64,000 bases of DNA, taken from the IMG/VR virus record IMGVR_UViG_3300046171_000231, positions 171,762-235,761 of that record; one strand, written 5' to 3'. The notes below the pieces were generated by a model. It was not told the DNA's origin. It did not search any database and saw only the letters and a list, made by a program, of their open reading frames with translations. The position numbers and the translations under genes are program-made. Within the stretch, counting starts at the first letter, position 1; each line of letters opens with the position of its first letter. Positions 58,933 to 64,000 of the stretch are shown piece after piece.

Positions 58933-59274
58933 TTAATAATCTGTAACATTTAAAAATTGATTGGTTAAGGTATGCTCTAATGCGTATGCCTCCTCCTCTC
59001 TTTGTGTGTCATCTCTTAACCCCCTTACGTTTTGGTCAACGTGAATTAATTCGTGTATAAGGGTTGTTATAAAATCCTTTTCCGTTAAGTTGTTATGGAT
59101 TTCAATTTCGTTTTGGTCGTTGTTTTCTAATGTCCAACCAAAGACGTTATCCTCTGTTAAATCCGTGGGAATAACTTCAATATCCACTTCCGTTAGGTTT
59201 GGATATAATCCAGACATAAACTCAAAGATTTGATTTCCAAGAGTTGTAAATCTTTTATTAGTGATAATAAACAT
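58933..59274 (-). CDS. HExxH zincin / SprT-like metallopeptidase
   Basis: EIEIHNNL...TTLIHELIHVDQ...EEEAY. Confidence 0.75.
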   Translation of the reverse strand: MFIITNKRFTTLGNQIFEFMSGLYPNLTEVDIEVIPTDLTEDNVFGWTLENNDQNEIEIHNNLTEKDFITTLIHELIHVDQNVRGLRDDTQREEEAYALEHTLTNQFLNVTDY

Positions 59275-59396
59275 AAGGGTTAATTGCTTATATCCTATTA
59301 TTGCATATTTTCATATAAAAAAACTGGGTAGTGTGCCAGTTCATAAACTGTCCACTTTAGCTTGCACTGGTCAACCTCTCCGCTTATAATAAAGGT

Positions 59397-59461
59397 ATAA
59401 GAGGGGCAGGGTCGCCCCGATGACGCAAAAGTTCGACACTCCCCCTGCCTTCTTTTTTTTT
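59397..59461 (+). ncRNA. Candidate small structured RNA 1
   Basis: TTGCAC-17-TATAAT promoter, 5'/3' pairing stem, T9 tail, no ORF. Confidence 0.55.
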
Positions 59462-59471
59462 AAAAATAAGC

Positions 59472-59498
59472 AAAAAAATGAAGGTACTAACACCTTCA
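59472..59498 (-). terminator. Terminator of the MutH-like gene
   Basis: TGAAGGT-gttagt-ACCTTCA followed by T7. Confidence 0.75.
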
Positions 59499-59548
59499 GA
59501 GTTTTTTACAGGCACCTTACAGGCGATCCTGGTGGGAGTAGTTTGGTA

Positions 59549-60142
59549 TCATATGATACTCTTTGCGAATTTCCCTGTTAAGTAAAATGCCATTCCCTTA
59601 TTTTTCAATGTTACCCCTTTATAGGTTAATGGGTGATAAGGTTTTGAATCTTTTGTTCTGATTTGTAGTAAACCATTTAATCCTGTAATGGTTGTTAACT
59701 CTTTATCGTCTAAGTATGCAAATTGAACTTGTTCTGCGATATATTCAAAATCTTCTTCTAACATTGCATAAATTTCGGGGTTTGAATTTTCATTAATTGT
59801 TGTAGTTCCTATGAAGTTGTTTTCTCTGTCAAATGCAACAAATAATGTATTTTTTAATTTGATACCAACTTTAGTTTCTGGGAATGTTTTATAACATTCG
59901 TCATCAATTAATTCTGGTAATGTGTGTTTAAGTTGAGTAACCGCAATTGATTCCCCTTTAGTAAACGACTTCAATTCTCCGTCTACCATATCAGTAAGTT
60001 TAGAACTATTGGGAATACCAAGTGCAAGTTCTAACAACTGTCCCCGAACCCCCTTATTTTTTCGGGGTTTTGGTAGTGTGGTAAAATCAACCTTAGTTAG
60101 ATTGAATTGTACTTCTGAGAGGGTTAAAGTCATTTGCTTCAA
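59549..60142 (-). CDS. MutH/Sau3AI-family PD-(D/E)xK endonuclease
   Basis: NKGVRGQLLELALG...TD...GELKSF and LQIRTK match MutH/Sau3AI motifs. Confidence 0.8.
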   Translation of the reverse strand: MKQMTLTLSEVQFNLTKVDFTTLPKPRKNKGVRGQLLELALGIPNSSKLTDMVDGELKSFTKGESIAVTQLKHTLPELIDDECYKTFPETKVGIKLKNTLFVAFDRENNFIGTTTINENSNPEIYAMLEEDFEYIAEQVQFAYLDDKELTTITGLNGLLQIRTKDSKPYHPLTYKGVTLKNKGMAFYLTGKFAKSII

Positions 60143-60268
60143 TTGCGGTTATACAACTATTATAACCCCACCCATTCACGAAATGGGGCTACAGGTGTGC
60201 CAGTTTGTTAACTGGCATATGGGACTTACACTCCTAACCAAATTTGGATGTATGATGCCCAATAGGTG

Positions 60269-60451
60269 CTATATGCACCTATCGTCAAATAGTCTCTGTG
60301 CTTGCTTCGTGATTGCGTCACGGACTCCACCTCTTGGGTGAGCAAGTAATTCATCTAACTGCTTTTGAGTTAGTTTGTTTGATACTCTGAAGTTTTCTTC
60401 TGCTTCAACTAAGCAATCTTCAAGTATTGATTCGTGATGTAATGTACTCAT
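60269..60451 (-). CDS. Small early protein
   Basis: MSTLHHESILEDC...; promoter and CCCTT leader upstream. Confidence 0.65.
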   Translation of the reverse strand: MSTLHHESILEDCLVEAEENFRVSNKLTQKQLDELLAHPRGGVRDAITKQAQRLFDDRCI

Positions 60452-60526
60452 TTTTTTAAGGGAAATGTTTGTTATGTACTTATTATAGTCGGTAAGAGTA
60501 CCTTTGCAAGTACTCTTAACAATCTC

Positions 60527-60790
60527 TTAATATTCTGCAATCTCTCTAAGATAGCAATCAACCTCCGCAAAGGTTAACCAACCTTTAATTGAATCGTCTA
60601 TAATGTGACCATTTGGGTTGATTTCGGCAAGTTCGTATAATCCGTCATCACCCCCATATGAACCAGTATGGTTTGCAACACTAGCACCCCAACCATTAAG
60701 AAAATGAAATTTTTCAATCTGTCCACCAGTCCTGTAAAGTACCGCATAAGGTTTAAATGTGTTTAAAGAGTGAAGTTGTTTAGTAGGCAT
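60527..60790 (-). CDS. Conserved small phage early protein
   Basis: FLNGWGASV...SYGGDDGLYELA...GWLTFAEV. Confidence 0.7.
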   Translation of the reverse strand: MPTKQLHSLNTFKPYAVLYRTGGQIEKFHFLNGWGASVANHTGSYGGDDGLYELAEINPNGHIIDDSIKGWLTFAEVDCYLREIAEY

Positions 60791-60875
60791 AAGAGGAATT
60801 AACTTGTATGTACTAATTATAAAATGTGGTTAGGGGCTTTGCAACCCCTATTGTGCCACTTTCTAAACTGGCATA

Positions 60876-61298
60876 CTACCAGTTGTTACAGAATACATAT
60901 CCGTTATTGAATGTATAATCCCATGAGAGTCCATCTTCCCATGTTTTCTCCCAGTCGATAGCAACCCAATAGGGCATGTCTGGCATCCCGTAGCAATCAT
61001 TTAAAAAATTCTCAGCAAATTCTGCTTCGCTGTCGAACCTTCCATGATACGCATCATTAAGGTGTTCAACATCCATGAGATCAAATTCCTCAAGAAATGC
61101 GTCAACTGTCTCTTGGTCGTATTCTTCAACCATTCTTGCGTAGTCTTCAAAATAACAAACAAAGTCTTTTGCTCCGTGAGTTTCGATAAACTCTTTCATT
61201 TCGTCTTCGTCATGCCCGTCTTCAATTAATCCTTCTAGGTGTTCTTGGGCATGTGCTTCAGTTGGAAATGAAGTTGTTGGGGCGATTTCGTAAGGCAT
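60876..61298 (-). CDS. ArdA-like antirestriction (DNA mimic) protein
   Basis: Very acidic; DAYHGRFDSEAEFAENF...PYWVAIDWEKTW resembles the ArdA C-terminal domains. Confidence 0.72.
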   Translation of the reverse strand: MPYEIAPTTSFPTEAHAQEHLEGLIEDGHDEDEMKEFIETHGAKDFVCYFEDYARMVEEYDQETVDAFLEEFDLMDVEHLNDAYHGRFDSEAEFAENFLNDCYGMPDMPYWVAIDWEKTWEDGLSWDYTFNNGYVFCNNW

Positions 61299-61364
61299 AG
61301 TTTAAGGGTGAACTGTTTTAAGTATAGGATAGAGGGTCACGCATGGCAACCCCCAAATATTAAA

Positions 61365-61558
61365 TTAATATAAAGAATAACCTACGACTTCTTCTCCGAA
61401 CATTTCCGAAGCATCAACCGCATGAAATCCAGTTGTTAAAAGTCCGTCAATATAGGACTCATCTTCCAACTCTTCGGGTAGGTCATCTTCTTCAACATCA
61501 TAACCAATGTTGATCTCATCTTCAAGAAGTAAATCTTTGTATTCGTCAATAGTCATTT
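61365..61558 (-). CDS. Small very acidic early protein (likely start MTIDEY)
   Basis: TTGCAT-17-TATATT promoter and CCCTT leader lie inside the longer ORF call. Confidence 0.6.
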
Positions 61559-61629
61559 TTGTAAGGGAAATTTGTTTACGTTCTAATATAAACCAAGTTG
61601 CAACCCAATGCAACCCAGCTTGTGCCACT

Positions 61630-61797
61630 TTATGAACTGGCACGTCTTCGCTTGATTTCGTGTTTGGCAAGTGCTAGTCTTTGGTTCTCTTCTTCAGTGT
61701 TGAGAAGTTCCATTATACTTAATGCACGTATCATGTTACGTAACCCGACCATCTCCATGCGACGCACGTAACCCGCCTGATTATAGGTGTCGATCAC
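61630..61797 (-). CDS. Small early protein (55 aa)
   Basis: MIDTYNQAGYVRRMEMVGLRNMIRALSIMELLNTEEENQRL...; stop lies inside palindrome 4. Confidence 0.55.
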   Translation of the reverse strand: MIDTYNQAGYVRRMEMVGLRNMIRALSIMELLNTEEENQRLALAKHEIKRRRASS

Positions 61798-61934
61798 TTC
61801 ATCACCTCATCAACTAGGTTATCGTAAGTTTGAATGTCCCAACCTTTCTGCTCTGGGACTTCCATTTCGTATGCGAACATGACTAGTTCTTGTAGGTAGT
61901 CTAGTTGCGATTGTGTCAATGTTAGTTGTCTCAT
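61794..61934 (-). CDS. Small early protein (46 aa)
   Basis: MRQLTLTQSQLDYLQELVMFAYEMEVPEQKGWDIQTYDNLVDEVMK. Confidence 0.6.
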   Translation of the reverse strand: MRQLTLTQSQLDYLQELVMFAYEMEVPEQKGWDIQTYDNLVDEVMK

Positions 61935-61971
61935 AGGGGTGTGTGTATCTAGTTGTATTATAGCATGTGTG

Positions 61972-62012
61972 TCTAGTCGAGATTGTTAAGACATGCTTAA
62001 GTCTCGACTAGA
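61972..62012. repeat. Inverted repeat TCTAGTCGAGA...TCTCGACTAGA (hairpin of the array decamer)
   Basis: Perfect 11-bp arms with an inner TTAAG/CTTAA pair. Confidence 0.8.
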
Positions 62013-62019
62013 TGTTTTT

Positions 62020-62349
62020 TTAAATCTTCATTCCGTCAACGAATGGTTTAAGAGTTCCGAAATCAGATAGGAACCAATCAAAGTTTCTCTGTACCACTCT
62101 GGCACCGTCACAAAACTCTTCAAGTATTGCATTTAATCTTGATTTGGTGGTTACGGTCTCCCAACCTGCACTTGAGATGTTAAAATCATTTGATGCAGTA
62201 TCAAACCACGCAATGCAATTACCGTGAAGCATAACGTTTACTTCAGTCGTGATGCCATCTTTTTTGTAGCAAGTGACGGTGGTGTTACTACCTGACCAGT
62301 TCTTTCTGTGTCTGATAGCGTGGTTCATTTGCTCTTCAATCTTTCTCAT
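62020..62349 (-). CDS. Conserved phage early protein (TTKSRLNA motif); true start MRKIEE
   Basis: Own TTGCAT-17-TATAAT promoter; the upstream part of the 277-aa ORF call is the shadow of the next gene. Confidence 0.72.
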   Translation of the reverse strand: MRKIEEQMNHAIRHRKNWSGSNTTVTCYKKDGITTEVNVMLHGNCIAWFDTASNDFNISSAGWETVTTKSRLNAILEEFCDGARVVQRNFDWFLSDFGTLKPFVDGMKI

Positions 62350-62431
62350 AATGTTTGGGGGTTGATTTACTTTTATTATAATGGGTGGGGTTACGCAATG
62401 CAACCCCAATGTGGACAGTTTAAAAAGTGTC

Positions 62432-62932
62432 CTAATAGTATCCTGCTGCTTCCATTCCTGGTTCATCATAGAAACATTGGAATGATAAGTCTGGATACTT
62501 CTCACGCAATTTCTCCATAATTCCTTCGGGTGGACTCCAAGCAGTATCAAATTCGAGTTCCAATATCTCCGCATCATTATACTCAATGTCAACATCCCCT
62601 GCATCCCACTTTGTACCCCAGTTATTAACGCACCACATATACCAACGATCATCATTCGTACCATCTGGAAAGTTGTATGTTTCCCACATAAGTCTTCCGT
62701 CTTTGTTGAATTCCTGTTTGAGAACTGGTAATACTCCTTCCTCATTTGGAATTGTCTTGAAATCAGGTACAGGAAAAATCTCATTAAAAGGTTGTGCCTT
62801 TCTGAAAGTCTCCTCAATCTCCTTGAGTTTTGCTTCTGATTCTTCATTACCAAAGATTGTAATTCTGTTGTGACACCAGTTCGGCATAAGGGTTCTCCGT
62901 TTGTGTATGTACTTATTATAATGGATGGTCAC
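62432..62932 (-). CDS. DUF1281/YubB ferredoxin-like domain protein (likely start MPNWC)
   Basis: MPNWCHN...WYMWCVNNWGTKWD...FDTAWSPP...YDEPG. Confidence 0.8.
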   Translation of the reverse strand: MTIHYNKYIHKRRTLMPNWCHNRITIFGNEESEAKLKEIEETFRKAQPFNEIFPVPDFKTIPNEEGVLPVLKQEFNKDGRLMWETYNFPDGTNDDRWYMWCVNNWGTKWDAGDVDIEYNDAEILELEFDTAWSPPEGIMEKLREKYPDLSFQCFYDEPGMEAAGYY

Positions 62933-62959
62933 ACGGATGCAACCAATAGTAGACAGTTT

Positions 62960-63234: not shown

Positions 63235-63360
63235 ACAGCGGGGATAACGTTTACATTCCTACTATACCCCACTCACAACAAAAAACAACCCGTAATGGAC
63301 AGTTCATAAACTGGCACACTCAAGGTTGTAATGTCCTTTATATTCGATTATAATGAGTAT

Positions 63361-63425
63361 ATAACAAAAACAAGAGTCTGGGGTAGGACTGATAGAAAAC
63401 CTTCGCCACTCCCCGAGCTCTGAAA
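63361..63425 (+). ncRNA. Candidate small structured RNA 2 (homologous to RNA 1)
   Basis: TTGTAA-17-TATAAT promoter; GGGGTAGG...TTCGCCACTCCCC core. Confidence 0.5.
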
Positions 63426-63489
63426 TAATAACTGTAACCTTCTGTAATATTTGGGATGGATCTTATCGCAATCCAGCTGCCCCGTCAAC

Positions 63490-63665
63490 TTAAGTTGTGC
63501 CACTTCGGATACTGTCCACTGGCACCCCGTTCTCTAGCAATTTCGTGTTAGAATGGATAAACTCATCGGGAAAAGAGTTTATGCTTTTCGCCCAATCAAT
63601 TTTTTCGACCTTCAGGTCATCCCAACATTCGATGTCTAGCGTGACTGTGTACACACGCTTATGCA
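63490..63665 (-). CDS. Small early protein (likely start MHKRVYTV)
   Basis: TTGACA-18-TATCAT promoter at 63726-63697. Confidence 0.55.
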
Positions 63666-63747
63666 TGATAATGTGTATCTCGAAGTGTATGTACATATGA
63701 TAGCACACATCTAGATGACGTGTCAAGTATATGAGTATATGCACACA

Positions 63748-63928
63748 TCTCGACTAGATGATATGATGTGCGGGTGTCTCGACTAGATTCATATTCACAT
63801 ACAGTATATGAGATGATGAATGATGATGAGAGTCTCGACTAGACTTATTATATGTGTGATATATCTCGACTAGCTTCTATGAGAATTATGAGTATCTCGA
63901 CTAGGAAAAATTATCAGACCTCGACTAG
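63748..63928. repeat. Array of six (T/C)CTCGACTAG decamers with unique spacers
   Basis: Copies at 63748, 63777, 63833, 63864, 63895 and 63919; spacers 19, 46, 21, 21 and 14 nt. Confidence 0.9.
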
Positions 63929-63967
63929 TTTTTATGTCAGGATTCTCAGAAATTTATGCCCGTGATG

Positions 63968-63996
63968 TTGACAAATCGCCCGTTCGATGCTACGCT
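63968..63996 (+). promoter_or_regulatory. Sigma70 promoter pointing out of the window
   Basis: TTGACA-17 nt-TACGCT with extended TGn. Confidence 0.65.
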
Positions 63997-64000
63997 CGCT

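Follow-up and report, generated by a model that had tools for sequence, protein, structure and literature searches.

Does a short stretch lying between two genes of a large T4-like cyanophage, on the strand opposite to them, encode a small RNA of its own, or is it merely a terminator that happens to follow a promoter-like word? This question is raised by positions 59362–59461 of a 64,000-nt stretch (hereafter, the window), which is the last 64 kb of the 235,761-bp IMG/VR virus record IMGVR_UViG_3300046171_000231. The closest cultured matches of the window are Prochlorococcus myoviruses, and its psbD is 94–96% identical to that of high-light Prochlorococcus such as strains SB and MIT 9314. The genome has 34.9% G+C and a uniformly negative GC skew, which fits the location of almost all genes on the minus strand. 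Plus-strand transcription units therefore look exceptional here. The initial annotation proposed an early small RNA of approximately 65 nt, transcribed from the plus strand, GC-rich, free of ORFs, overlapping no gene and belonging to no assignable family, in which the 5′ part pairs with the 3′ part and an inner GUCG/CGAC stem is possible.

The predicted transcription unit at 59362–59461

The observation itself was confirmed, as the promoter, the G-rich/C-rich pairing and the nine-U run were all found where they had been described. The unit occupies a 274-nt gap between two minus-strand ORFs. One of them, at 58933–59274, encodes a 113-aa M78/DUF6782-like protein, and the other, at 59549–60142, encodes a 197-aa protein of phrog_15364 with a weak match to MvaI/BcnI, a family that shares the MutH fold. 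The G+C content of the element is 0.52, compared with 0.349 for the genome. The features of the unit, together with a second copy discussed below, are as follows.

59333–59355, plus strand: inverted-repeat promoter box GTGCCAGTTCATAAACTGTCCAC, with half-sites of the GTGCCA / GTGGACA type, 29 nt upstream of the −10.
59362–59367, plus strand: −35-like hexamer TTGCAC, followed by a 17-nt spacer.
59385–59390, plus strand: −10 hexamer TATAAT; the transcription start is inferred near 59397.
59397–59402, plus strand: short purine-rich leader (AUAAGA), about 10 nt shorter than in most relatives, which have GGGGACAAUC-type leaders.
59403–59418, plus strand: conserved hairpin P1, composed of GGGGC (59403–59407), loop AGGGUC (59408–59413) and GCCCC (59414–59418).
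59419–59431, plus strand: A-rich linker GAUGACGCAAAAG, containing a non-conserved AUG at 59420.
59432–59439, plus strand: conserved single-stranded box UUCGACAC (family consensus UCGNNAC, usually UCGMCAC).
59440–59452, plus strand: C-rich segment UCCCCCUGCCUUC, which in this copy pairs back onto 59399–59411 to form the terminator stem.
59453–59461, plus strand: U9 tract, the inferred 3′ end of a transcript of about 65 nt.
59479–59498, either strand: bidirectional terminator-like hairpin, preceded by A7 and followed by U6, which ends the 197-aa gene on the minus strand and acts as a back-stop for the plus-strand unit.
63295–63425, plus strand: second, divergent copy of the unit (63349–63425 from its −10 onward), composed of an inverted-repeat box (63295–63318), TATAAT (63349–63354), hairpin AGUCU-GGGGUA-GGACU (63375–63390) and box UUCGCCAC (63402–63409).

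The word TTGCA-N16–18-TATAAT occurs 5 times in the window against 0.41 expected, indicating that it is not a chance match. All five lie within 59362–62942, of which four are on the minus strand and serve the early genes, while the present one faces the other way. RNAfold reproduced the proposed pairing of AAGAGGGGCAGGG with CCCUGCC-UUCUUU at −18.9 kcal/mol. This fold alone is not unusual, since its z-score was −1.18 and 25 of 200 shuffled sequences folded as well. The stem at 59399–59411 / 59443–59456 runs straight into the U-run that ends at 59461, so that the 3′ end of this copy, though not the conserved core, satisfies the definition of an intrinsic terminator. The minimum-energy fold did not form the inner GUCG/CGAC stem, which would compete with the hairpin P1. 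The statement that the unit has no ORF is not literally true, because a 53-codon ATG frame runs over 59420–59581. The unit overlaps no gene on the other strand, as it ends at 59461, or at 59507 at the latest, while the convergent gene ends at 59549; it would overlap only read-through minus-strand transcripts, and does not fit a cis-antisense RNA.

A conserved family with one compensated hairpin

An exact 18-mer of the element (GAGGGGCAGGGTCGCCCC) hit 16 IMG/VR loci, of which about 12 are cyanophage-like and share much more than the 18-mer. Two degenerate patterns built from the shared blocks, and one built from the 3′ block of the window copy, enlarged the family to 74 distinct sequences after removal of duplicates. 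They come from T4-like cyanophage contigs of 0.33–0.6 G+C and up to 258 kb, and align without gaps in the hairpin. A BLAST search of 50,697 phage records found the element only in S-SRM01 (a freshwater Synechococcus phage of 240 kb), P-SSM2 and P-SSM5 (each 252 kb), and one single-cell marine virus, and no feature is annotated under any of these matches. In P-SSM2 it lies at NC_006883 66488–66534 on the minus strand, and in S-SRM01 at about 90095–90256 of MW015081, also on the minus strand, with a second copy about 1.5 kb away. A covariance model of the family (R2) detected two copies in the window's own genome (70.6 and 45.3 bits, the latter with E 8.5e-12) and one in P-SSM2 (33.2 bits), none in S-RIM2, S-MbCM25 and P-HM2, and nothing significant in Syn9 (13.2 bits, E 0.13). 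On this sampling, the family belongs to P-SSM2/S-SRM01-like large cyanomyoviruses rather than to all Kyanoviridae.

Read 5′ to 3′ on the strand of the element, the members begin with the inverted-repeat box, whose half-sites and their complements are about 10 nt apart. It is present in 62 of 73 members, and in 60 of those 62 it lies 29–31 nt before the −10. A −10 hexamer matching TATAAT in at least 5 of 6 positions was found in 59 of 73 members, mostly 18–22 nt before the hairpin (12 nt in the window copy). These are followed by a purine-rich leader, a 5-bp hairpin with a six-base loop RRGGUM, an A-rich linker of 9–14 nt, and the UCGNNAC box, of which U, C, G, A and C are invariant. A variable segment comes next, which is either C-rich (..CCCCCUGC..) or, in many high-GC members, G-rich (..GGGGCAGC..). 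It leads into AT-rich sequence and then a U-run, a strong hairpin that also terminates the convergent gene, or another promoter of the same kind. The strong hairpin lies 35–45 nt downstream in most high-GC relatives and is equivalent to that at 59479–59498, while the C-rich segment plus U-run is shared by the nearest relatives of the window copy, the contigs designated L209, L210, L228 and L232. The inverted-repeat box, with a TTGCAA −35 and a −10, also precedes ordinary protein genes in S-RIM2 and S-MbCM25, as well as four protein genes in the window's own genome, in which only about eight such promoters occur in 235 kb. It is therefore a special class of promoter and not part of the RNA.

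RNAalifold predicted exactly one consensus helix, the short hairpin, both on a first 48-sequence alignment and on the 74-sequence alignment. Standard pairs were formed in 370 of 370 cells, against 71% in shuffles and 40–70% when the partner was slid. Changes on both sides were found in 80 cells against 16 expected, four of the five pairs change on both sides, and the covariation score was 0.80 against 0.24, which was reached by 0 of 500 shuffles. The sequences are phylogenetically related, so that these shuffle counts overstate their independence and are not probabilities. Each hairpin was also located by a best-hairpin search before aligning, although it falls in the same ungapped columns throughout, and alignments made without that step, including a model-derived one, recovered it as well. 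Sixteen different 5′ arms occur, among them GGGGC, GCAGC, GGUGG, GUUCG, GAGCA and AGUCU, each with its matching 3′ arm. The closest relative of the window copy, L210, has the same leader and the same 3′ half, but GGUGG-AGGGUA-UCACC in place of GGGGC-AGGGUC-GCCCC. Forty-seven cells are G.U and none is A.C; on the other strand those 47 cells would be mismatches. This indicates that the pairing is selected in the plus-strand transcript, which argues against a DNA palindrome or a minus-strand RNA.

The long 5′/3′ helix has no comparative support, as 69.9% of cells paired against 69.7% in shuffles, and in many members the G-rich 3′ segment cannot pair in that way. In the window copy and L209, L210, L228 and L232, however, the minimum-energy fold is this long imperfect hairpin, ending exactly at the U-run. 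We hence read it as the intrinsic terminator of this sub-group. It uses the 5′ arm of the conserved hairpin, so the two folds exclude each other. A UGAC/GUCG second helix, and a helix two columns away from (rather than at) the GUCG/CGAC stem, also showed no covariation; the latter stem overlaps the 3′ arm of P1. A pseudoknot between the loop and the C-run was considered by eye and dropped, since members with GAAGUA or GAUGUA loops, or with G-rich 3′ segments, cannot form it. A tRNA-like reading, with UUCGACA as a T-loop and GGCAGGG/CCCUGCC as an acceptor stem, was likewise considered by eye and dropped because relatives do not keep it, and a tRNA and tmRNA search found none.

A search of the whole window against Rfam 15, including PhotoRC-I/II, wcaG, manA, glnA, abiF and the Yfr RNAs, gave no hit at gathering thresholds. 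In E-value mode only noise was obtained at the locus, where the best hit was ylbH at 16.8 bits against a threshold of 50, on the wrong strand, and PhotoRC-I scored 11.3 against 45; nothing was found in three relatives. The family model found nothing significant in two HLII Prochlorococcus, one LLIV Prochlorococcus and two Synechococcus genomes, so this is not a captured host sRNA. Simple complementarity searches with the 3′ box found no site in the phage genome other than the genes themselves. In two HLII Prochlorococcus genomes there was no complement of at least 15 of 18 bases, and the one 11-of-12 hit is inside an ORF and at chance level. The replacement of the C-rich segment, which would be the obvious seed, by a G-rich one in many relatives weakens a simple base-pairing model.

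RNA libraries from seawater contain this stretch as assembled, unstranded contigs. In an oligo-dT library, a 77-nt contig covers 59384–59460 without a difference at depth 24, with a depth of 7 to its left and 18 to its right, while the 197-aa gene is almost uncovered. Variants in the homopolymer runs, strain differences and oligo-dT priming on the flanking A-runs can all produce such a pattern, so that it is not counted as proof of expression. Two metatranscriptomes carry a related strain in which the sequence right of 59274 is replaced, showing that the unit is dispensable, or at least exchangeable, among close strains.

What the unit is thought to be

The interpretation given in the initial annotation was partly supported. 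Its central inference, an independent, non-coding, promoter-to-terminator unit opposite to the genes and outside known families, holds up well, whereas its secondary structure is not supported, and the words "early" and "65 nt" remain inferences. It had also missed the inverted-repeat box, the second copy 4 kb away and the link to an iteron array. Our analysis establishes that promoter and RNA are conserved as one unit, that a plus-sense hairpin with an RRGGUM loop is kept by compensation and followed by a conserved unpaired box, that no reading frame is conserved, and that Rfam and the host genomes searched contain no match. The remainder is inferred from sequence, including expression from the predicted strand and the size of the transcript (about 65 nt, or about 110 nt if it reads through to the next hairpin). 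In this view, the host polymerase would make the RNA early, because the promoter is of the host sigma-70 type. The loop and box would form a recognition module for a protein or nucleic-acid partner, through which the RNA most likely acts in trans, since the stem is free to change while the loop and box are not, the 3′ part is interchangeable, and most copies are closed off by terminators with nothing downstream to regulate. The variable 3′ segment would serve mainly as a platform for expression or termination, and the C-run of this copy would double as the terminator. We regard this composite as more likely than not, and within it, the existence of a genuine RNA gene as very likely, much more so than any particular mode of action.

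Other readings were weighed against it. A cis-acting, promoter-proximal attenuator, in which the hairpin and box bind a factor deciding whether plus-strand transcription stops at the U-run or runs on, antisense to the upstream early genes and toward the iteron region, would make the short RNA a by-product. The mutual exclusion of the two folds in the window copy and its close relatives is in its favor, as are the many AT-rich relatives that lack a terminator after the box and run into a second promoter of the same type, the orientation of all copies toward the iteron array, and one contig (L013; 1 case in 75) in which the element precedes co-directional ORFs and can thus also serve as a leader. 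It is nevertheless considered unlikely, since most high-GC relatives have a strong bidirectional terminator directly before a convergent gene, and the alternative helix shows no covariation across the family. Similarly unlikely is a replication-linked RNA acting as a primer, R-loop former or regulator for an origin defined by the iteron array and AT-rich stretch, of which the present unit would be a displaced paralogue. This is attractive for the second copy, whose surroundings are described below, and recalls T4 oriE, which combines an early promoter, a non-coding RNA and iterons, and lambda oop RNA, which lies beside ori-lambda. However, the present copy has no iterons nearby (the nearest are at 61972/62002), another promoter and a terminator-like hairpin separate the second copy from the iterons, and the uniformly negative GC skew gives no origin signal; origin function of the repeats is itself only supposed.

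A DNA-level element, in which the palindrome and the repeated GGTCGCC-like words are binding sites for a protein and the covariation merely reflects a symmetric operator, could be suggested by the GGUCGC shared by loop and box about 22 nt apart (roughly two helical turns) in high-GC members, and by the density of other protein-site-like repeats in the region. It is very unlikely, as a DNA palindrome does not predict the G.U/A.C asymmetry, the stem sequences differ completely between members while the loop is kept, and a promoter sits at a fixed distance upstream. An ordinary bidirectional terminator with a fortuitous promoter match is consistent with the unremarkable fold of the window copy and the true bidirectional terminator 20 nt away, but it is contradicted by the joint conservation of promoter, hairpin and box in 74 distinct sequences and by the conserved hairpin not being adjacent to the U-run. 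A small protein starting at the AUG at 59420 is the least likely. Although the frame is open in the window, several relatives have 12-codon frames from the same AUG, and a 68-codon frame in L013 starts there and abuts the next ORF, the AUG is absent in L210 and in most of the family, being replaced by UUG, AGG, AAG and others. Contig L005 has a TAA after two codons, S-SRM01 has no start and a TGA just upstream in that frame, frame lengths vary from 2 to 68 codons, and substitutions fall on first and second codon positions without concentrating at third ones.

Small phage RNAs with their own promoter and terminator are already known, of which lambda OOP RNA (77 nt, listed as a cis-acting phage sRNA in PMC12197685) is the textbook case. 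Both OOP and the present unit are self-contained, transcribed against the neighboring genes and convergent with an upstream gene, and OOP also lies beside an iteron-bearing origin. There is no similarity in sequence or structure; OOP overlaps the 3′ end of cII and works as an antisense RNA, whereas the present RNA would stop before the convergent gene and has a conserved loop and box that antisense action would not need. At T4 oriE, a host-type early promoter reportedly drives the non-coding RNA_E toward a cluster of direct repeats (Vaiskunaite et al. 1999; Kreuzer & Brister 2010), which resembles the second copy at 63295–63929, but the present copy is 4 kb from the repeats, no homology is expected, and RNA_E is not known to us to have a conserved hairpin or box. 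The cyanophage RNAs named in the literature examined are CfrI of S-PM2, which is about 225 nt and antisense to psbA/F-CphI, and the Rfam motifs PhotoRC-I/II, wcaG, manA, glnA and abiF, which are cis-regulatory leaders of metabolic genes (PMC9964418, PMC12197685); none matches here. The PeSL (promoter-early stem-loop) cassettes of T4-type phages (Arbiol et al. 2010) are likewise compact modules of an early promoter plus a stem-loop in the plastic early region between small genes, but are reportedly co-directional with the genes they serve and thought to act as recombination and regulatory cassettes, while the present unit faces the other way, has no gene to serve and carries a conserved RNA sequence with covariation. 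The host sRNA Yfr1, with its conserved single-stranded ACUCCUCACAC between hairpins, shares a C/U-rich single-stranded stretch next to a hairpin, but the present unit gave no Rfam match, it has no homologue in the five host-type genomes, and the C-rich stretch is not universal in the phage family.

The present family, its promoter class, its two-copy arrangement and its association with an iteron array were found neither in Rfam nor in the literature searched, which did not extend to the Syn9 transcriptome (PMC5029184); Sullivan et al. 2010 does not mention the RNA, and searches for the sequence words found nothing. T4-like cyanophages are among the most abundant viruses in the ocean, yet very few of their non-coding RNAs are known. 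This appears to be a further, clearly structured family with its own special promoter, conserved from freshwater S-SRM01 to AT-rich Prochlorococcus phages, and lying in the early host-takeover and anti-defence gene region. It gives a concrete, testable handle on early regulation, and possibly on replication control, in phages that include the culturable P-SSM2, P-SSM5 and S-SRM01, and the alignment is a ready seed for an Rfam-type family.

The second copy and the iteron array

The divergent paralogue at 63295–63425 is followed on the same strand by a third inverted-repeat-box promoter (63497–63519), a short hairpin with a U-run (63552–63590), six direct repeats of TCTCGACTAGA (63748–63929), and about 700 nt of AT-rich DNA in which no obvious long ORF was seen by eye. 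Two copies 1.5–4 kb apart on one strand are the rule in relatives. The copy nearer to the repeats lies about 350–450 nt before a similar array in the window, in contigs L228, L007 and L217, in S-SRM01, and in P-SSM2 with its single copy, although the repeat word drifts between CTCGTCGAG, ATCTCGACTAGAT and GATCTCGAACAGATT. A promoter-driven non-coding unit directed toward iterons was thus observed for the second copy and for that of P-SSM2, but not for the unit at 59362–59461. It could be speculated that the two RNA copies, the inverted-repeat-box promoters and the iteron array together form a so far unmapped replication-origin or master control region of P-SSM2-like cyanomyoviruses, in which the RNA would be the ligand or regulator of the protein that binds the iterons, or the primer or R-loop RNA. 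This would make it an RNA-controlled origin in an abundant group of marine viruses, but we consider it improbable on present evidence.

In high-GC relatives, the counterpart of the unit at 59362–59461 is convergent with a Kyano_Gp96 (PF23790) gene and has a DUF7249 gene to its left. In the window, the Gp96-like gene is located at about 62020–62350, and extra genes, namely the 197-aa gene, an ArdA-like gene and others, lie between it and the RNA.

A second copy of the RNA unit and the repeats that follow it

A second, divergent copy of the same RNA unit was detected on the plus strand of the window and was scored at 45.3 bits by R2, the covariance model of the family. The features of this region are as follows.

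63295-63425 (+), the second copy, comprising an inverted-repeat box, TATAAT at 63349-63354, hairpin AGUCU-GGGGUA-GGACU at 63375-63390 and box UUCGCCAC at 63402-63409
63497-63590 (+), a third plus-strand inverted-repeat-box promoter (-10 TAGAAT near 63549), followed at once by a short hairpin (GGAUAAACUC / GAGUUUAUGC) and UUUU
63748-63929 (+), six direct iteron-like repeats of TCTCGACTAGA spaced 24-56 nt apart
61972 (-) / 62002 (+), an inverted pair 1.7 kb away from these repeats

The third promoter with its short hairpin may represent another tiny RNA or an attenuator in front of the iterons. The same or a drifted repeat word follows the RNA copy in P-SSM2, S-SRM01 and the contigs denoted L007, L217 and L228, and the array may be an origin of replication or a regulator-binding array. 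In P-SSM2 (L192 1000-1480; NC_006883 about 65980-66460, minus strand), the 400-nt unannotated gap between PSSM2_098 and PSSM2_099 holds the RNA copy, two further inverted-repeat-box promoters in tandem, and an array of ATCTCGACTAGAT-type repeats in both orientations. Furthermore, window positions 63351-64000 were compared with the genome start (L270 1-650), and the end of the contig was found to repeat its start with a few differences. This suggests terminal redundancy or a circularly permuted genome of about 235.1 kb, although the record is listed as linear in IMG/VR.

Minus-strand signals and genes around the RNA gene

On the minus strand, the left half of the inverted-repeat box (59333-59355) is part of a terminator-like hairpin followed by T7 (59321-59342; GAACTGG..CCAGTT + TTTTTT). 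The intergenic gap therefore carries two minus-strand terminator-like sites flanking the RNA gene. Four TTGCA-N16-17-TATAAT promoters were located on the gene strand within 2.5 kb (60482-62942, minus strand), each ahead of small ORFs, which looks like a dense early-promoter cluster. The neighbouring early genes look like host-takeover or anti-defence functions, as listed below.

60876-61298 (-), an ArdA-like anti-restriction protein (phrog_36653)
59549-60142 (-), an MvaI/BcnI-like nuclease-fold protein
58933-59274 (-), an M78/DUF6782 metallopeptidase-like protein
62432-62932 (-), an Api92-like DUF1281_C protein

An exceptional contig and a split psbA match

In one contig (L013, positions 200-460), the element lacks the inverted-repeat box, follows a co-directional terminator, and precedes co-directional ORFs, of which the first starts at the element's own AUG. 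This was the only such case seen. Outside the window, at 92.7-94.7 kb of the genome (L271), the psbA match is split, such that a 259-aa ORF carries a TAG inside the Pfam match and is followed by a separate C-terminal piece. This may be an intron or an interrupted gene, as occurs in some cyanophage psbA genes.
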